Shown: piece by piece, positions 9,961-18,069 of the stretch | How positions within the stretch are numbered: the stretch's first letter is position 1 | Layout of the letters: each line of letters starts with the position of its first letter | Assembly (NCBI GenBank): GCA_977017575.1 | Contig: CDRNVI010000004.1 | Span: 620,001-684,000 of the forward strand | Length of the DNA: 64,000 nt | DNA from: Paramoeba atlantica | Taxonomy: Eukaryota; Protista; Discosea | Direction: 5' to 3' | The notes under the pieces: model-generated | The model's database searches: none | Told to the model about the DNA's origin: nothing | What the model saw: the letters and a program-made list of their open reading frames with translations, nothing else | Position numbers and translations under genes: made by a program

Positions 9961-10461
9961 CATAGTCTAACTAGTATACTAGTATATACTATGAGATACT
10001 ACTTTTTTGTAGACTGGGTATTTACTAATCGTAATCAACGGACGCATGGAAAACCTCAAGCAATTCAACGTTCAAGACAAAGGAAACAGAAGAATATGCT
10101 GAATGCTTCATTCTCCAACAGTTACTTAACAAATCAACCAATAAACTTCCTTAAAAATCAGGAATTGATTTGGTTTACCACAGCGCAGATGCGCGCAGAG
10201 AGATGAAAGGATGCTTATCCTGAGCGAAAGTTGAGTCGAGTGCGTGAAAATGTGAGAAAGGGGTGAAAGGAGCTCAGATCTCGCATTCCGCGCATAAACG
10301 CTTCCTCACATATTTTTCATTGGTATATGATGTAAGAAAAGAAACAGATCAAAAGCGTGTAGCACGAATATACGAATAAAATTAATATATTGTAGTGTAA
10401 TAAAAAATACTAAACGTGGCTATTTTCATCAATGCATAAATATTTATTTATATGTTATTCT

Positions 10462-10499
10462 GAATTAACGATAAAGATTACAGTTTCTGTACCTTGTTG
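10462..10499 (+). ncRNA. Spliced-leader exon-like sequence (relic, not a complete SL RNA gene)
   Basis: AATTAACGATAAAGATTACAGTTTCTGTACCTTGTTG matches the euglenozoan SL core ACAGTTTCTGTAC...TTG; no recognisable SL intron or Sm site follows. Confidence 0.8.
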
Positions 10500-10651
10500 A
10501 TTACATTCCTTGTTGTTTTATTTCTAGTCTCTCACTCCCACATGCCCGCCTGGGAATTCCCCAAGAGAACATGCCGTGATTGTGATCGCCGATTCAAGCG
10601 AATAATGCGTACAAAATCTGTCCGAAATGTTTTCTCGGCGCTAAGGAGCCA

Positions 10652-11635
10652 ATGGTGGCAGGAGTGAAGACTGAAGATCTATTTCAACTTTTTACGTCTT
10701 TCATTTCCTCTCTCTCCGAAAAGAGAACAGTTGCTCACAACCTTCGCCGGGGGGACCATCATATTCGTGGTCTCCAAACGCGCGCGAATGTGGACAACGC
10801 GAATGTGCCGTCTGGTCGTGCAGGTAAACGCCCGGCCAATAGTTCCAAGGGGGATCTCACAGAATCTCAAAAACGACTTGATCCAGCTCCCGCAGTTCAC
10901 AATCCGTTTTCGTCTCTTCGTTTCTCGAAGGGCAGCTCGAATGAGGACAAGAAGGCTCCATCACGTCTGACTTATTCACACGTGACAGCTGGTCATTCTC
11001 TCAAATAGTCCAAAAAACCCGCAAAGTCGAACTACGGGACTTCCACCACGTCCCGCTTGTCTCCCTTCCCCAAACGCGCAGGTGGGACTTCACGCCTAGA
11101 TGACGACCAAGTGGCCTCTAAGCCGAAAGCGCTGAAACCAGGGAAGTCCTTTGCAGAACGGTTTGGGGAACTGAAGCGGGAGCTTCAGACTCAGGAAGTC
11201 GCCAAGTACGGCGCTCTTCATAATACGATTGCAATCCACAAGTTACAGACTCAGAGTCTCAAGCTAGAATACAAGTGGATGTTACAAGCTCGGCGTCTGC
11301 AGGAACAACACATGCACCACATGTTAAACCTGCAGCAGCAGTGCCAAAATGCACTGCGGATTGTCGAGCGCGGTGGCCACATTTGTTCCACATGCCATCG
11401 CAAATTTATGGATCAGTCTTCCCTGGAGGAACATCAGCGGTCGCACTCCGCCGCTAGGGAGAAGCAAAATGCGAGATTTATTCAATCTCAGGCGCTGAAA
11501 AGAGAAAGCTTGTTTTTGTCATATCAAAATGCGAGATCGCATAATAAATCAAGAGGAAGATTCCAGCCTCCACATCGCGTCGCGATTTCTTCCTCGCGTT
11601 ACCCACCTCCACCTCGAACGTGCGCCGCCACCTAA
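10652..11635 (+). pseudogene. CRE ORF1 (coiled coil plus C2H2 zinc finger) with an in-frame TAG at 11006-11008
   Basis: ORFs 10652-11008 and 11057-11635 are in one frame separated only by TAG; CSTCHRKFMDQSSLEEHQRSH. Confidence 0.75.
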
Positions 11636-14600
11636 ACGTGCTACCCCCAGTTCTAGGCCTTCCATTGACGAACCAGGTGGTTTCGGCGGCGAGTGGGATG
11701 AAGATGATATTTCTTCCCTTGATTCGGAGACTCATGCATCCTATGTGACCAAAGTGGCGTTGTTCCTGGAACCGGAGAAAACGTCCCACGTCCTGGTAAC
11801 AGGGCTCAGCCCAAGCGCGTCACTTGGATTGCTCCGAGATCACGTGGCAGCCACAATTCAACTCCCAAACAGCCTTATTCAAATCGTGGATCCGACCTCA
11901 TATGAAGAGTTACCTCTCTCTGGGATTATCGGTCCCCCGACGACGGAATGCGTGTACGGGGCTACTATCAAGGCCCCACCAGGAGAAAAGTCAGGCAACG
12001 AAATCCCAATTTATTGTCAAATTGAAGATCACCCAATCCGTATACCTGAGGGTGTAGCGCCGGTTGAGTACCCTGTTGCTATCTGCCACTTTCTAGGCAT
12101 TGAACTTTCTTTGTCAAAATCCTGGGAACAGATTAAGGATGCGAGCGGGGTTTCATGGTGGTGCTTTAGGCCACCGGAAGTTCTGTCATCAGAAACTGGC
12201 TGGTCCAAAGACCAAGTTCATACATGGTTAATAAGAGGGGGTATTGAGAGCAACCCCGGCCCACGGGCAGTGTGGTGTTTCCGGTCAACTAAAAACGTCA
12301 TCGCCAACTCTGGTTGGTCCAAAGCGCAAGTACGCACCCAGCTGATCCGAGGCTGCATTGAAAGCAACCCCGGACGGGGTAAGAAGAGGGGCCGACCCCC
12401 CGGAAGAAAGTTCACACCTTCAGGTTCGTTGGATCTCGGGTCACTTCAGATCCAAGCAGACTCGACGATAGAGGAAAACCCAGGCCCGGAGCGCCCACGC
12501 GGCCGGCCCAAGGGAAGCAAAACAAGAGTTAAAGATGTGTTGAATCTGGAAGAAATTCACCCTGGAAGCCCTTGCATATCTGGGGCCTCAGAAGCAGTCC
12601 CACGTGGGACCATACTGGAGAAGATTGCGGGAGGAATATTCGAAGATTGTTCAACCAAAGAGGTTCAATCGGGATCGCATATCTCACAGAAACTGTGTAA
12701 TACGACAAATCTTCCGCCTCGTCAACTCCACGAAATACAAAGCCTGTGGGAAACATACACAAAACTGAATACGCGACCTAGTCTGCGTAAATTATATCAC
12801 CTGCAATTACCGTGCTGGAAGGAATTATGCGGTGGAATATGCAGAGACTTTGAAATACAACACACAGACACAAAAGCAAAGATGTCGTGGAACCTATTAT
12901 GCGCAGTGAAGCAGTTCTTATTCCTGCCCGAAAGTCAACTGACTCATCGGCAACTGGCTTATGAACTACGAAAGCGGATGGCCGAGCAAGAACCAAAATT
13001 TACCCCTTCGCTTGCAACCAAAAGTGTGGCAAAATTTGACCCGGTAGGCCGAGCAGAGGCACTGCTTAAACTTGGTGCGATCGGGAAAGCGGCAAAAGCG
13101 CTAGAGGCGAAGGAACGACAACCACTATCTACTGAAGAGATCGCTAAGGCCATAGATCGACTTCACCCAAAGACCTTTCGGGGTTATAAACATTTGCCGG
13201 CAAAATCTATGGACATCGAAAAGCAAACCTTAACTGACAGGGCTAGAAAGCTCGCCAAAGGATCCGCGCCGGGCCCATCAGGCTGGACACGCGAACTTCT
13301 TATACCGCTCCTAGAGGACCAGGATATCGTGGCCTGCGTTACTTGGATAGCTACAGCAGTGCTGCGAAACTCCCGAGACGCTCAGCTAAGGGACGTCTTA
13401 ACCAGCTCCACTCTGATCTTGCTGCGCAAGGAGGGCCCTTCCGTAGAAGGATCCCCAGCCTTCCGACCTATAGCAATGGGGGAAATCTTTCTTAAATTGG
13501 CTAGCCAAATCGCCATGGACAGGGTAGCAGAAGCAACGGGCAGACTTTTCCAAGATACACAATTTGGTGTTGGAACAAGAAACGGAGGACCTAAAATAAT
13601 ATTAAGGGCAAGAAACGCGTTTCGTCAAAAAGCGGACTTTGTGCTCTTGACAGTAGACATCCGTAACGCCTTCAATTCAATTGAAAGAAGCGCGGTGTTT
13701 CAGTATCTAAGGGGAAATGATGAATTTCACGAGCTATACGGGGTGACCTCATATGTATATCGGGCTCCAACTACGATATTTAACTCGTCGTGTTCGCCGA
13801 ATAAGGTTCTGAGGGGAGTCCGACAAGGCGACCCATTAGGACCGTTACTGTTTTCTCTCGGCTTGCACCAAATTCTTGGAAAATTAAAGGATGAGTTCAG
13901 TGATCTGACGCTTTGGGCTTACCTAGACGACCTTTCAATCATCGGCCCGGCAGAACGTGTCGCACAGGCGTTTGGCGCTCTCTGTGATCACGCTTCGGGA
14001 ATAGGACTGGAGGTACATCCGGCCAAATGTAAGCTTTCGACGCATTTCAATGACCAGTACGCTCCTTTCAGAGGTATGAACATAGAGCATGCGGAGCAAG
14101 GACAAAAGCTCCTAGGTGCATTCGTCTCCAAGGAAGGCGCGGATGAAACCAGATGGGTAGTCAACCAAATGCCTAAATTGCAGACATTCCTGGATCGGCT
14201 GCAACATCTCTCGTTACAAAGTGCTTACATTTTGCTGAAGAGATGTGGAGTCCCCCGGTGGGACTACCTAATGCGGTGTCATGAGCCGGAGGTAACGGCA
14301 AAAGCCAACGTGTTAGCGGACAAGGCCATACAGGAGTGTGCCTCAGAGCTGCTAGGAGGCCTCGAAGACCTGGAAAAGAACCCGTTTCACAGTACTCTCA
14401 TGACGGGCGACCTTTTGGGGGCGAAACCTTTTGCGCAGCAAGCGGCAACTCTGTATTCTCGCACAAAAGCTGAGGTATTAGGGTGTATGGAAAGACGACG
14501 TTCTGCCTTGACAAGATATGAAGAGTCGAAGTCAGCAGTGCGTAAAGAAACCAGCGAACTACATGACGTCCATTCACTTCAGTTGATGGACAAGAGAACG

Positions 14601-15278
14601 CGCAATTGGACAGAGGCGCGTAGGAATCGGGGTGAGTACTTCATGCGCGACGCAGAATGGCAAACAGCCATGCGCATGCGATACTTGATAGCACCTACTT
14701 CGGACCCTTTCGCACAATGTGAGTGCGGAGACATCCTCTCAAACAAAGATTTTGTTGTGCACGCCCTTGACTGCAATAAAGTCAAAGGCGACACTGCGGC
14801 CACTCGCCACAAACTTGTTAAGAATGCCTTCGTGCACTTGCTACGACAGTACGGATTCACTCCTGACAATCATGAACCCCGATTCTCTGCTGGTCAGGGC
14901 CCCGACGTCTGCTTTATGCTGGGAGGGAAGATATGTCTGGTGGACGTGACCGTCGTTAACCCCCTCGCCCCTTCTTATGTTAAGGCCGAATGGGTAGCGC
15001 CTGGCAACACTCTAGAAAGGGTGGAAAGCTTGAAAGTAAAAGCGCACAGTGACATGGCCACGAAAAGGGGTATGCATTTCTACCCCCTTGCATTTACCGT
15101 TTTTGGTGTGGCAGGGAAGCACACCGTACTCCTCCTAAAGGAGATCGCAAGGTATACGTATGACAGGAAAGGTTTCCTGCGTCATGCACTACAAGCCATT
15201 AATGTGGTTGTTCAAAAAGGCAACGCCGCGATACTATCCTCCGCGGTAAAAGAGTGGAGGAAGGCGGGTGTCCGCTAA
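11529..15278 (+). CDS. CRE ORF2: 2A-like motifs, AT-hooks, reverse transcriptase, CCHC knuckle, restriction-like endonuclease (1249 aa, intact)
   Basis: SAPGPSG, FRPIAMGE, VDIRNAFNS, GVRQGDPLGPLLFS, AYLDD, CECG..H..C, RH, PD, VDVTV, ESLK. Confidence 0.95.
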   Translation: MRDRIINQEEDSSLHIASRFLPRVTHLHLERAPPPKRATPSSRPSIDEPGGFGGEWDEDDISSLDSETHASYVTKVALFLEPEKTSHVLVTGLSPSASLGLLRDHVAATIQLPNSLIQIVDPTSYEELPLSGIIGPPTTECVYGATIKAPPGEKSGNEIPIYCQIEDHPIRIPEGVAPVEYPVAICHFLGIELSLSKSWEQIKDASGVSWWCFRPPEVLSSETGWSKDQVHTWLIRGGIESNPGPRAVWCFRSTKNVIANSGWSKAQVRTQLIRGCIESNPGRGKKRGRPPGRKFTPSGSLDLGSLQIQADSTIEENPGPERPRGRPKGSKTRVKDVLNLEEIHPGSPCISGASEAVPRGTILEKIAGGIFEDCSTKEVQSGSHISQKLCNTTNLPPRQLHEIQSLWETYTKLNTRPSLRKLYHLQLPCWKELCGGICRDFEIQHTDTKAKMSWNLLCAVKQFLFLPESQLTHRQLAYELRKRMAEQEPKFTPSLATKSVAKFDPVGRAEALLKLGAIGKAAKALEAKERQPLSTEEIAKAIDRLHPKTFRGYKHLPAKSMDIEKQTLTDRARKLAKGSAPGPSGWTRELLIPLLEDQDIVACVTWIATAVLRNSRDAQLRDVLTSSTLILLRKEGPSVEGSPAFRPIAMGEIFLKLASQIAMDRVAEATGRLFQDTQFGVGTRNGGPKIILRARNAFRQKADFVLLTVDIRNAFNSIERSAVFQYLRGNDEFHELYGVTSYVYRAPTTIFNSSCSPNKVLRGVRQGDPLGPLLFSLGLHQILGKLKDEFSDLTLWAYLDDLSIIGPAERVAQAFGALCDHASGIGLEVHPAKCKLSTHFNDQYAPFRGMNIEHAEQGQKLLGAFVSKEGADETRWVVNQMPKLQTFLDRLQHLSLQSAYILLKRCGVPRWDYLMRCHEPEVTAKANVLADKAIQECASELLGGLEDLEKNPFHSTLMTGDLLGAKPFAQQAATLYSRTKAEVLGCMERRRSALTRYEESKSAVRKETSELHDVHSLQLMDKRTRNWTEARRNRGEYFMRDAEWQTAMRMRYLIAPTSDPFAQCECGDILSNKDFVVHALDCNKVKGDTAATRHKLVKNAFVHLLRQYGFTPDNHEPRFSAGQGPDVCFMLGGKICLVDVTVVNPLAPSYVKAEWVAPGNTLERVESLKVKAHSDMATKRGMHFYPLAFTVFGVAGKHTVLLLKEIARYTYDRKGFLRHALQAINVVVQKGNAAILSSAVKEWRKAGVR

Positions 15279-15643
15279 TTGAAATTCCATTCTGAATTGA
15301 TAAAGATACCTGAAGGAATACTTCAAGGACTTACACGACACTGAGTTAAACCACAGAACCCAGTTCCGACGTCAATACATAGTGCATAATAGTACAATAA
15401 ACCGTTGCTGTGGACGAAAAAAGTATTTCGCTTGTTGAACACTGAGAAAAAAACCAGAGAAAAATATCTCAGATACGGAGAAGAAATACCACAAAACGGA
15501 GCTCTGGACGTACGAATATTATCGCAATATTACCACATATTCTATTTACCGCAATTCAATTGATATTTACCGCAATGTATACCCTGTATGCTACGATACT
15601 CTATATGTATGATACTCTGTGCGCCATGTAGTTCGATATTATT

Positions 15644-18069
15644 TTATATGGAGTGTTCCGTGTCAGATCCACGCTTTGCCGCCTTTTTTGCACGACTTGT
15701 ACGATACGGTAGCGGGTTCTCGTTTCCGCGAAGAAACATTTGTGTCGCTACAACATCTGTTCCAATGCGAGCTTGACGGGCACAATATTTCCAGGAAAGC
15801 ACCGAAAGGATAGAGTCACATGCCGTCACTAGCGGAGGAAGCTATAGGTAATGCAATGCAGCTTCAAAAATTGTCGGAAAATGTTTCAACCCAAGTGTTT
15901 GCCACCACTCAAGATCGCTCATGCCGGGTGTCCACTGGTAATCGTCGCAGTTTACGTACGTACTCCATTCCTCAATAGTAATGTCGAAAATCGGGTCGCC
16001 AGTTCCCAACAAATCATTTACCCGTTCCACTGAAAGGGATTCCTTCTTGCGAGGTCGAGCGGATAAGACGATCCACTCAGGCGAAAACCACATCACAGCT
16101 GCCCATACCTTCATCTCGTGGTTTGAGCATACTCTATTGACGTGCCGATGTATCGACTCTAAGAAATGCCTGGGTGAATTCTCAGCAGACTCGACAAGCT
16201 GTCGCAAAGTTGGATGAACAAGAGTTGCCATAGGACGATCCTGCATGTCAGAGAATTTTTCTTGTGCGATGCGTAACGGCATACAGTCTTTCAGGAAATC
16301 CTTCGCAGACTGCATCAAGTCGTTCAAAGAGTTGTTTTCGAACAAATCAGCCAAATGGTGGACAGATTGAGGGGCTCGCAGAGTTTCCAGTTCACTTTTT
16401 ATGAAGGATGCGACAGTAGGCAACTGATCAGCCAAAAACCTCATGCTTTCGAATTTATCCGCGAGCCACCGCGTGACCCCGCCAAGTTTGGGAGAAGTGA
16501 CGGCTCGAATTTCATGAGAATGTGCAATGGATTTCACCACACTAGCACCTTTCGCAATTAGAATCTCACATTGATCTTCCATTTCCAGAGTTTGATTCAG
16601 TTCGGCAAACACATCGCGTGCCTTTAAAGATACTTTCGAGAGAGTTTGCAATGCTTCCTTGAGATGAGCTATGGTGTCCCTGCGACCCCTCTTGTCAAGT
16701 TTTTCGCTGTTCACAGAACGATAAAAAGATTTAAAGTACGATTCAGCTTTTTGAGTCTCTTCGTCAAAGGCGCTTAATATATCTTCAAGAGCTTTTCCGA
16801 AATACTTCCCCTTCTTTGCCCCCACACGGTCCCCTGCATAGAAAATCCTGGAGAAGTATGTTCTTACTTTCATAATTGGCAGATTTGCGTAGTGCTGCAT
16901 TGCATCTTTGGCCATATTATGAAACAAGTGTCCGAAGCATGGTAATAGCGCGACACGTGGACAGTGCTTCGTCACGCCAATTACAATGTTCTCCCGGTCC
17001 GTGCTTCCGATAGAGCTGAGGCGCGAGTAAAATCCTTCCTCTGCGGAAACAAGAGAGTCACGAATGCCTAACATAGTGGTTTCTATTTCCTGCCTAGCCA
17101 CATTATTTACTGGGGCTCCGTCTGCCATTATGAATCGCAACTTTAGGAGTCGGCTCTCGGAGAGGCATGACCGAAGTACTTCTATCAGGGATTGTGCCAT
17201 CTCGCTACCGTTAAATGATTTGTGCTTAGGGTGGTAGATAGGTGGGAGAATAAAGTGGCGATCCACAACATACAAAATGGCGATAAGTACATGTTCGCTA
17301 AGAACCCTGTCAACTCCACCGTCGATGGCGAGGCCAAAGAATTTAGCTCCATCTATGGTTCGTCGAATGTCTTCCCAGATCATGTCGGCAATTCGACGTT
17401 CACTGATATGAAATTCGAGGGAGAAGGAAGGATCGATGCAGCTTCTGAAGGATGTATGTCGGGGGGAAATTCTTGAAATAAGTTCTTTACGCACTCGAGG
17501 AATCCTTCGGTAGAAAGATTGCTCTGAGCTGCAAAACATGGGAGAGCTTCGGAGATGTACTCCTCTAGCGACTTGGGATTTGCAACTTCACTGGAGTCTT
17601 CCATCCCCTGCTGCGCCTTCGAGCAGCACTCTTTCAAATGTTTATAACAAAAATTCTCCCCCTTGCTATGGGTCACCCACCCACATACTTTACATCGAAC
17701 ATGCTGTGAGTGGCCCATAGTATCATTCCGGATGCCTGAGACGTTTTTCCGAGCCCACTCGAGGCACGATTTTCCAGAGGACTCAACGCCGAGATTGCAT
17801 CGCTCGTACGTTAATTGCTGCTGTCGACGGAGGCTTCCACAAGCGAGTGGATCGTTCCCGCAGTTGCTTTTTCTCTTTCTCTGGAGAGCATTCTCCTCTT
17901 CAAGCGGAGAGAGGGACGCACTTAACGCTACTTGGGAAGGTGTCTCCTTTAACTGTGACGTAATTGCGGCTACTCTCTCGCGATGCTCCCGTGCTGACGG
18001 TCGCTTTCTTGTGTTTTCGGGGGTGGGGGTTGAAGGTGCGCTTTCCGAGTTCTTTGAACGTTGCGTCAT
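15644..18069 (-). pseudogene. hAT transposase with one frameshift (~17500) and one in-frame TAG (15842)
   Basis: BED-like CKVC...HLKEC, LAIDGG, MADGA, CFGH, TRW, and WW..L..FP..AL..L*LPP dimerisation-like tail continuing to 15644. Confidence 0.85.

Follow-up and report, generated by a model that had tools for sequence, protein, structure and literature searches.

Introduction

2A-like sequences were reportedly described in APE-type non-LTR retrotransposons by Heras in 2006. Cellular 2A/StopGo sequences are tied to this type of element, namely Rex1, L2, CR1 and Crack of animals and L1Tc/ingi of trypanosomes, and the RLE-type elements are generally regarded as older (PMC3708506). The expanded core of the viral class A 2As is (D/G/C/N)(V/I)ExNPGP (Li 2026, PMC12846837). 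With G, C, N or T at p12 about 90% activity or more is reached, T being a rare variant that is active in its own natural context (PMC12846837). AGIESNPGP of infectious flacherie virus and ECIESNPGP of ADRV-N reach about 99% and about 97%, respectively (PMC8623073). In the class B 2As the centre is EEGIE-P-(N/H)-PGP and the Trp at position 16, counted from the C-terminal Pro, is invariant (PMC12338488). Tandem 2As in viruses give a total separation of about 99.9% (bioRxiv 10.64898/2026.09.24.754024). T2A works at 80-90% in T. cruzi, that is, StopGo operates on kinetoplastid ribosomes (PMC10830525).

The window, the whole stretch of 64,000 nucleotides that was analysed, contains a copy of a non-LTR retrotransposon with three 2A-like motifs. 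An earlier sequence-only reading had assigned these motifs to a CRE/RLE-type element and knew of no report of 2A in such elements; likewise, no report of 2A in RLE-type elements was found in the literature searched. With a probability of roughly three in four, we regard the three motifs as genuine, selected 2A/StopGo-type sequences of an RLE-type non-LTR retrotransposon in a kinetoplastid-like genome, which separate an N-terminal protein from the RT-RLE.

Motifs and AT-hooks of the window copy

As shown in Table 1, the + frame of the ORF at 11529-15278 contains GGIESNPGP, GCIESNPGR and TIEENPGP, which end at 12263, 12377 and 12488, respectively. Motifs 1 and 2 are 38 codons apart, motifs 2 and 3 are 37 codons apart, and the first two terminate a duplicated 38-aa unit, WCFR...GWSK.QV.T.LIRG.IESNPG. 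Positions, spacing and duplication were re-read in the sequence as first reported, and so were the AT-hooks directly after motifs 2 and 3. Both hooks have the RGRP core with basic Lys/Arg flanks that defines an AT-hook (KKRGRPPGRK, RPRGRPKGSK). AT-hook 1 also stands directly after the 2A in families L013, L014 and L028 and in P0123 and P0220, and KRPRGRPKGSKT comes after the 2A in families L008-L012.

Table 1. Features of the retrotransposon copy in the window
Feature	Position	Strand	Basis or remark
Target-site-duplication-like direct repeat, 5' copy (ATTCTGAATT..GATAAAGAT.AC)	10457..10481	.	Read directly; passes into the spliced-leader head
Spliced-leader (mini-exon)-like head at the 5' end of the copy	10465..10499	+	..ACAGTTTCTGTAC.. 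core
Remains of the family's single long ORF	10543..15278	+	From six aligned sister copies
C2H2 zinc finger of the N-terminal protein	11378..11446	+	Pfam zf-C2H2, E=4.5e-4, below curated cutoff
Ubiquitin-like (beta-grasp) domain 1	11736..11978	+	AF2 model, VIA-align
Second ubiquitin-like domain, probable	11988..12170	+	Last strand (WCF) opens 2A module 1
2A/StopGo module 1 (WCF..GWSK..LIRG-GIESNPG/P)	12159..12263	+	Core fits (D/G/C/N)(V/I)ExNPGP (PMC12846837)
2A/StopGo module 2 (WCF..GWSK..LIRG-CIESNPG/R)	12273..12377	+	Inactivated in the window copy, Pro>Arg at 12376
AT-hook 1 (GKKRGRPPGRK)	12378..12410	+	Directly after motif 2; from sequence only
2A-like core 3 (TIEENPG/P)	12465..12488	+	Without the conserved upstream module
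AT-hook 2 (ERPRGRPKGSK)	12489..12521	+	Directly after motif 3; basis as for AT-hook 1
Reverse transcriptase domain	13455..14051	+	Pfam RVT_1, E=1.7e-17, aa 643-841
CCHC zinc knuckle and restriction-like PD-(D/E)xK endonuclease	14649..15275	+	Alignment A1, AF2 model
3' end of the element (..TAATTGAAA)	15279..15288	+	No poly(A); copies diverge past 15279-15288
Target-site-duplication-like repeat, 3' copy	15289..15309	.	Matched to the 5' copy

Motif 1 (GIESNPGP) and the family form of motif 2 (CIESNPGP) conform to the class A expanded-core octapeptide. The skip site of module 1 is predicted to lie between the G codon at 12258-12260 and the P codon at 12261-12263. Upstream of the cores, modules 1 and 2 have ..L(I)RG, a helix in the AF2 model; the corresponding stretch of motif 3 is ..LQIQADS, without G at p11. 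Motif 3 has S-T at p11-p12 and is not preceded by the conserved module, so that its activity is uncertain; its counterpart in L028 reads ..SMSDPNPIE... The remark that none of the motifs has the canonical Asp holds, p12 being G, C or T, but it marks no weakness, since these are documented active variants (PMC12846837; PMC8623073). Assignment to the class B 2As (Rao 2025, PMC12338488) was rejected, as the conserved Trp is at position 21, not 16, and the residue preceding the Asn (p15) is not Pro. An additional Trp of module 1 is at position 13 from the C-terminal Pro.

The Arg of motif 2 results from a single CCG>CGG change at 12376 that is private to the window copy. In the five other copies and in DNA contigs of two runs the codon is CCG (Pro), giving CIESNPGP. 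The Arg was thus correctly read in this copy but is not a feature of the family; that it is a designed, 'graded' non-skipping variant was considered and rejected, since it is a defect of a dead copy. The core of module 1 is retained in all six copies. Module 2 is closer than module 1 to the single module of the sister families (pN 0.08).

A single long ORF broken in the window copy

The ORF of the window copy is interrupted three times, by deletions of 4 bp at 10597 and of 2 bp at 11524 and by a TAG stop codon at 11006-11008. The stop at 11006 and the deletion at 11524 are private to this copy, and in the alignment of six sister copies the frame stays open at every break in those copies that have a sense codon or the additional bases there. 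Natural ORFs span the break junctions in L004 (755 aa), L007 (631 aa) and L028 of a sister family (1006 aa). The same three, together with a 1,465-aa frame at C12:832362, run uninterrupted across the 2A. All of these statements on the ORF are based on natural copies. No fully intact copy of the window element's own family was found. An overlap of ORF1 and ORF2 at 11529-11635 with a programmed frameshift was considered and rejected as the product of the private 2-bp deletion.

With a stop, two frameshifting deletions and the Pro>Arg change in motif 2, the window copy is dead. The 'ORF2' that had been taken for a separate frame is the tail of the long ORF, cut off by private mutations, and the motifs therefore would part the RT-RLE from an N-terminal protein about 570 aa long, instead of just freeing small N-terminal peptides as first suggested. 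Searches with Pfam gave only sub-threshold zinc-finger matches on the N-terminal protein; the sister family L028 gave zf-met and zf-C2H2_jaz matches.

Endonuclease and insertion sites

The best solved relatives of the RT are R2 proteins, and LINE-1 ORF2p is also among them. Alignment A1 of the C-terminal region has the invariant residues C26, H38, C42, H54 (in RH), D99 and K129. The AF2 model of aa 1041-1249 has a pLDDT of 95.2, and in Foldseek it matched R2Tg and R2Bm with probability 1.0, E of 6e-7 to 2e-5 and TMq of 0.65-0.72, followed by other PD-(D/E)xK nucleases. No APE endonuclease (Exo_endo_phos) was detected in the window ORF by Pfam. Since the C-terminal model matches the R2 endonuclease, the element is of the RLE type.

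The copies end in ..TAATTGAAA(A), six to ten bases past the stop codon. They are 5'-truncated with a shared 3' end: they begin at 10505, 10886, 11879 and 12130, mostly end at about 15284, and differ in their flanks. The window copy is inserted within another repeat and has a 21-bp duplicated site. L018 has the same flanks as the window copy.

The core at the 5' end of the window copy is what we take to be a kinetoplastid-type spliced leader. Contig depth was very high over this 35-nt head alone, and this held for all runs, the RNA-like X5 among them. X5 is the sole RNA-like run and covers the head only; the remaining contigs are of the DNA type. L021, the one further copy extending into the 5' region at a site of its own, lacks the head.

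Ubiquitin-like region upstream of the motifs

Domain 1 superposed on ISG15 and ubiquitin in VIA-align with Z of about 10 and rmsd of 1.9 A over 70 aligned residues, so that the model has the beta-beta-alpha-beta-beta fold of ubiquitin. The region of the second domain had linear di-ubiquitin, ISG15 and FAT10, all tandem-Ubl proteins, as top Foldseek matches (probability 1.0, about 155 columns). A second Ubl domain is therefore probable in the model, with lower confidence than domain 1. By the structural alignment, ubiquitin would probably terminate near the WCF strand rather than at LIRGG.

Because the upstream part of the module lies within a region modelled as Ubl-like, some of its conservation may reflect folding rather than contact with the exit tunnel. 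Module 2 comprises no more than the final 38 aa of that domain. It would be unable to fold alone, yet it is conserved, which fits a function of the nascent chain. We know of no prior description of a Ubl domain adjoining a 2A site, or of AT-hooks between such sites.

Occurrence and conservation of the module

The genome was scanned with the pattern RTN GAR NNN AAY CCN GGN CCN, for which about 3 sites are expected by chance according to our own estimate. There were 85 (V/I)ExNPGP sites, in 26 distinct DNA versions, and none in the reversed-pattern control. A 35-aa module, WCFxP..L..[ST]GW[ST]...[VI]...LxRG[GC][VI]ExNPGP, is common to several diverged families. The final Pro is invariant in all of them, and the second Gly varies (RGG or RGC). 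A 5,438-bp array was observed on C54.

Between families, synonymous sites are saturated (pS 0.5-1.0) and pN is 0-0.29 in the last 12 codons. Modules 1 and 2 within the element differ with pS of 0.98 and pN of 0.07, indicating that the duplication is old and that both copies were kept. The 35-aa module is under strong purifying selection. Conservation across genomic copies, which the sequence-only reading had named as a check, is thus seen both among the copies and across diverged families.

A scored RT-RLE match lies 0.3-3.6 kb downstream on the same strand for 35 of the 85 sites, the scoring having covered 64 of 1,967 RT candidates. In a two-module family with VE(W/Q)NPGP, one site (C26:324041) is tied to an RLE match 4.1 kb downstream. 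No (V/I)ExNPGP site was located within 4.8 kb upstream of any of the 145 APE matches.

Of 95 remote relatives in which 300 aa or more precede the RT, 18 (about 19%) have LLxxG(V/I)(E/H)xNPGP. The motif is located about 290-550 aa, in some about 630-790 aa, ahead of the RT core. Its upstream part reads LLxAG or LLxSGD, with no RGG. A homologous C-terminal domain was detected by local profile search in 16 of the 18, the other two, P0123 and P0125, being truncated. No APE domain was found in the 13 of the 18 that were run through Pfam. One motif-bearing relative is a transcript of the prokinetoplastid Apiculatamorpha.

Discussion

An intact ORF would have about 1,580 codons. It would encode a zinc ribbon, a C2H2 zinc finger and one or two Ubl domains first, then two 2A modules of 35-38 aa, AT-hook 1, the third 2A core and AT-hook 2, and finally the RT, the CCHC knuckle and the RLE. 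We infer that at NPG/P the ribosome would fail to form the Gly-Pro bond, and the N-terminal 'ORF1-like' protein would be released. Translation would then resume from the Pro, so that the RT-RLE would be made as a separate protein with an AT-hook at its N-terminus; AT-hook 2 would be its extreme N-terminus after skipping at motif 3. Serial sites would raise the total separation, and incomplete skipping may give products with one or two hooks.

The motifs might instead stall ribosomes and cut the output of the downstream RT-RLE, a form of self-restraint with little productive skipping. In human cells, most of the tested retrotransposon 2A-like peptides (59-70%) lowered protein abundance instead of skipping cleanly (preprint 10.64898/2026.06.17.732966), down-regulation of ORF2p was also discussed by Odon 2013 (PMC3708506), and the conservation data are equally compatible with stalling. 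However, the cores are identical to those of highly active viral 2As (PMC8623073, PMC12846837), a single-ORF architecture requires that the N-terminal protein be freed from the RT, and resumed translation requires the final Pro that no family has lost. We therefore consider stalling unlikely.

A broader proposal is that the 35-aa unit represents a StopGo class of its own, the tail of a Ubl domain having turned into the exit-tunnel part of the recoding signal. The released zinc-finger-Ubl protein would end seven residues past LxRGG, and in the RGG families trimming by a deubiquitinase could leave a diglycine end fit for conjugation. In that case the element would supply a ubiquitin-like modifier along with the RT-RLE, whose number of hooks would be set by which serial sites are skipped. 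We hold this to be quite unlikely.

Ubiquitin and ISG15 have the tail LRLRGG. LIRGG, LMRGG and LFRGG resemble it, and the region upstream folds as ubiquitin-like domains in the models; LxRGG might thus be a ubiquitin-type tail after whose GG host deubiquitinases cleave the polyprotein, NPGP being secondary. This is very unlikely, since several families and module 2 have RGC, not RGG, and it is NPGP that is invariant, not the second Gly. The probable position of the ubiquitin end near the WCF strand and the 2A-typical LLxAG or LLxSGD of the remote relatives also argue against it. That the motifs resemble 2As by chance, or are the neutral and now functionless remnant of a viral fragment once captured, would suit a dead copy whose motif 2 is already mutated, but is extremely improbable given 85 sites against 0 in the control, purifying selection over saturated synonymous distances and a motif at the same place in remote relatives.

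If the motifs act as 2As, their presence in the RLE-type group widens the range of the mechanism, as they are selected, hold a fixed position in the protein and occur in about one fifth of the remote relatives with a long N-terminus. Skipping could offer single-ORF RLE elements a simple route to make an ORF1-like protein and an RT-endonuclease separately. Natural cores without Asp, joined to a conserved upstream part of unusual length, would be useful for probing which contacts with the exit tunnel matter. In annotation, splitting the genes of such elements at the first ATG past a frameshift should be avoided.

The element resembles the CRE clade (CRE1/2, SLACS, CZAR; PMC12278014) in its kinetoplastid-type host, its single ORF, its zinc fingers and its RT with RLE, and, in the window copy, in its association with a spliced leader. 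No 2A is known to have been described in CRE elements. Elements of that clade insert into spliced-leader RNA genes at a fixed position and carry a poly(A) 3' tail; here, at least four independent copies have flanks unrelated to each other or to SL genes, and the family has no poly(A) tail. Of the earlier CRE/RLE-type assignment the RLE part is upheld by the C-terminal model against R2, while membership in the CRE clade is not supported because the insertion sites are varied and poly(A) is absent. No CRE, SLACS, CZAR or other trypanosomatid protein was among the source-named matches or the ten clusters looked up, most of the best 270 matches being unnamed.

As in the APE-type elements, the ORF of a single-ORF non-LTR element contains an in-frame ..G(D/G)(V/I)ExNPGP towards its N-terminus, for which the proposed role is separation or regulation of the protein that bears the RT; the host group, kinetoplastids, is shared as well. 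Unlike them, the window element has a C-terminal restriction-like endonuclease instead of an N-terminal APE. Its 2A is about 570 aa into the ORF, after a zinc-finger/Ubl protein and not at the very N-terminus. Its p12 is G, C or T, never D, and it has up to three serial sites with AT-hooks between them. No such motif was seen in the many APE-type elements of the same genome.

The octapeptides of motif 1 and of motif 2 in its Pro form are identical to those of viral class A 2As, which also share the G at p11 and a hydrophobic or Leu-containing upstream part. The conserved upstream part of the retrotransposon is longer, reaching to -34, with an invariant GW at -21/-20 and R at -9. By our reading it falls outside the (R/K)DLTxE, PAPRLV, DLTxDG and LLLLSG groups (PMC12846837). 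Like the multiple 2As of picornaviruses and other RNA viruses, two or three serial sites precede one protein and arose by duplication (PMC11512398). Here, however, the carrier is a cellular retrotransposon and the spacers are 37-38 aa long; one spacer carries a DNA-binding AT-hook, so that the end with which the enzyme binds DNA would differ after partial skipping.

Motifs and AT-hooks in the window copy

The three 2A/StopGo-like motifs lie in one ORF of the window. A 38-aa unit is duplicated, its two copies (modules 1 and 2) ending in motifs 1 and 2, and the AT-hook core RGRP is found in both GKKRGRPPGRK, after motif 2, and ERPRGRPKGSK, after motif 3. The sequence-only reading, which reported the three motifs and the AT-hooks following the second and third, was correct as described. 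The back-translated pattern (V/I/M)ExNPGP matched 85 sites in the 45.7-Mb genome and the same pattern read backwards matched 0, which excludes a chance origin of the motifs.

Features of the element copy in the window
Feature	Position	Strand	Remark
ORF with the motifs	11529-15278	+	1,249 aa
Motif 1, GGIESNPGP	end 12263	+	ORF translation
Motif 2, GCIESNPGR	end 12377	+	ORF translation
Motif 3, TIEENPGP	end 12488	+	ORF translation
Spliced leader (SL)-like head, 35 nt	10465-10499		start of window copy
Duplicated site, 21 bp	10457-10481 and 15289-15309		flanking window copy
hAT-like ORF	15842-17539	-	in repeat around the element

A single long protein, interrupted in the window copy

The window was compared with six aligned sister copies of 98-99% identity. 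The TAG at 11006-11008 (TGG or GAG in the other copies), a 2-bp deletion at 11524 and CCG>CGG at 12376 in motif 2 were private to the window copy, and a 4-bp deletion at 10597 was shared with one other copy. Because natural ORFs of other copies (755 aa in L004, 631 aa in L007) cross these break points, the family, as read from natural copies, on which all long-ORF statements rest, has a single long protein as its product, spanning about 10543 to 15278, with the motifs ~570 aa into it. Copy L028 of a sister family has an uninterrupted 1,006-aa frame (500 aa before and 499 aa after the 2A), and another family, 43% identical, has the 2A together with the RT and its restriction-like endonuclease (RLE) in one frame of 1,465 aa. 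The separate "ORF2" described earlier is an artefact of the breaks in the window copy, since sister copies read through. Many whole-genome matches came in equal-scoring pairs from two separate contigs (C12/C2, C26/C59, C44/C70, C45/C54). Two haplotypes, or large duplications of recent date, seem to be present in the assembly, and copy counts are therefore inflated.

The 35-nt SL-like stretch alone had huge depth in all runs, the RNA-like run included. The SL core of the window copy suggests a kinetoplastid-type host. The head looks as if a trans-spliced mRNA had been reverse transcribed and joined through microhomology. The target of the 21-bp duplication (..GATAAAGATAC) is similar to the opening bases of the SL (window 10457-10515, 15289-15309). 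L021, the other copy that extends into the 5' region at a site of its own, is without the SL head. Window 10000-16000 was 98.9% identical to locus L018 (contig C9:84200-91700 of the host genome) over the whole 6 kb, both element flanks included, so the surrounding repeat, which carries a hAT-like ORF, was copied together with the inserted element.

Element type and endonuclease

Pfam located RVT_1 at aa 643-841 of the window ORF and no APE domain, the endonuclease of the other non-LTR retrotransposon branch, in that ORF. Among proteins of solved structure, R2 proteins came closest to the RT. When the last 209 aa were aligned with 55 homologues, C, H, C, (R)H, D and K were invariant, an order that fits CCHC followed by PD-(D/E)xK. 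The C-terminal AlphaFold model (pLDDT 95.2) matched R2Tg and R2Bm in their C-terminal part with zinc knuckle and endonuclease (TMq up to 0.72, Foldseek probability 1.0), and other PD-(D/E)xK nucleases ranked after these. The element is RLE-type. The earlier assignment to "CRE/RLE-type" elements holds for the RLE part; membership of the CRE clade is doubtful, as the copies have unrelated flanks and a common 3' end six to ten bases past the stop codon without poly(A). Among the 270 best database matches, mostly nameless, no trypanosomatid protein was present in the named matches or clusters looked up; one relative, 36% identical, was a transcript of the prokinetoplastid Apiculatamorpha.

For 35/85 sites, a scored RT-RLE match was found on the strand of the site, 0.3-3.6 kb downstream of it; scoring covered only 64 of 1,967 RT candidates, which makes this a lower bound. 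APE-domain matches in the genome numbered at least 145, many of them in ORFs of 1,200-2,600 aa, indicating that APE-type non-LTR elements are abundant; 2A sites within 4.8 kb upstream of these matches numbered 0, the nearest being one duplicated locus at 4.9 kb. Outside this genome, 95 relatives had 300 aa or more ahead of the RT, and 18 of these carried LLxxG(V/I)(E/H)xNPGP, usually some 290-550 aa ahead of the RT core. The homologous C-terminal endonuclease domain is present in all 18 but two, which are truncated, and no APE domain was found by Pfam in the 13 scanned. Two Diplonema papillatum RT proteins of >2,100 aa (P0116/P0117), with the same C-terminal endonuclease domain, read ..CCDGDIHPNPGP at aa 920-950, a 2A-like core with His replacing Glu.

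The host genome also has a two-module VE(W/Q)NPGP family, classified in part. Five VEQNPGP sites at C54:730573-752343 (minus strand), regularly spaced at ~5,438 bp, form a tandem array of a 2A-bearing unit. Members L042 and L047 of an IEANPGP family (C12:830217, C19:344028) carry at least 9 tandem ~45-aa repeats (..ASEDCAEAGSLRAGPYPKSHCNGGP..) between 2A and RT, their number varying by copy. An internally deleted derivative in two near-identical places (L038/L023; C12:549526-551097, C2:361244-362815) fuses the N-terminal protein, 2A and a short linker in frame to the RT end and RLE, with the frame open over 1,157 aa.

Upstream protein and conservation of the motifs

The N-terminal part contains a CxxC..CxxC pair near its start and a C2H2 finger; zinc-finger Pfam matches were sub-threshold, of the zf-met/JAZ kind in L028. 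The 176 aa preceding the first NPGP were modelled from an alignment of paralogous families (pLDDT 77.5). Residues 1-81 clearly had the fold of ubiquitin (Z about 10, rmsd 1.9 A). A second ubiquitin-like (Ubl) domain is likely to follow, because the best Foldseek matches of the whole model were tandem Ubl proteins (linear di-ubiquitin, ISG15, FAT10). In the model, the WCF opening module 1 is the last strand of this second domain.

Conservation across genomic copies, proposed as a check in the sequence-only reading, was found in 6/6 copies for motifs 1 and 3 and in 5/6 for motif 2. Several families with saturated synonymous divergence have the common unit WCFxP..L..[ST]GW[ST]...[VI]...LxRG[GC][VI]ExNPGP; between families, pS was 0.5-1.0 against pN 0-0.29 in the last 12 codons. 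Modules 1 and 2 of the window element differed by pS 0.98 and pN 0.07, so the duplication is old and both copies have been maintained. Module 2 corresponds to the tail of the upstream domain alone, and its conservation is therefore not due to folding of that domain; a nascent-chain function is the most economical reading of these sequences. Motif 3 is without this upstream unit, the corresponding L028 position reads ..SMSDPNPIE.., and motif 3 may be weaker or have arisen later. In a chimeric family (L008-L011; C56:67129, C30:124397, C52:73589, C8:76034), identity to the window is 93-94% from 12469 onward, exactly from the IEENPGP core, and the upstream part has its own GWTK..LIRAG module, which places the junction at the 2A core.

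Proposed mechanism

We infer that the single ORF is translated and the Gly-Pro bond of NPG/P skipped. Skipping would free a zinc-finger/Ubl protein, a putative functional counterpart of an ORF1 protein, and the downstream product would begin with Pro, followed by AT-hook, RT, CCHC and RLE. With three serial sites, nearly all ribosomes would separate both proteins, and the last-acting site would set the number of AT-hooks in the enzyme, one or two. That the motifs mainly attenuate translation by stalling seems unlikely. Cutting by a deubiquitinase after the Ubl-type LxRGG is more improbable still, as forms with RGC exist and NPGP is invariant.

Comparison with known 2A systems

The sequence-only reading had stressed that no motif has the canonical Asp. 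The absence is real; as a concern it falls away, since natural variants with C, T, N or V at this position are ~90% or more active (Li 2026, PMC12846837, where the core is widened to (D/G/C/N)(V/I)ExNPGP), and the viral cores AGIESNPGP (infectious flacherie virus) and ECIESNPGP (ADRV-N) reach ~99% and ~97% (PMC8623073). A class B 2A was rejected, as the conserved Trp of the window modules stands five residues away from the class B register. Picornaviruses are known to carry serial 2As (PMC11512398), tandem 2A pairs raise separation (bioRxiv 10.64898/2026.09.24.754024), and StopGo is functional in T. cruzi (PMC10830525). No 2A report for RLE-type elements was found in the literature searched, in which two surveys may hold such sequences unclassified. 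Class A peptides were noted in Perkinsela (Rao 2025, PMC12338488), and a 2026 preprint holds hundreds of 'non-LTR-like' contigs with 2As. Retrotransposon 2As have been placed in APE-type clades (PMC3708506; preprint 10.64898/2026.06.17.732966). In the present genome, the APE-type elements are without (V/I)ExNPGP just upstream, the reverse of the trypanosome situation.
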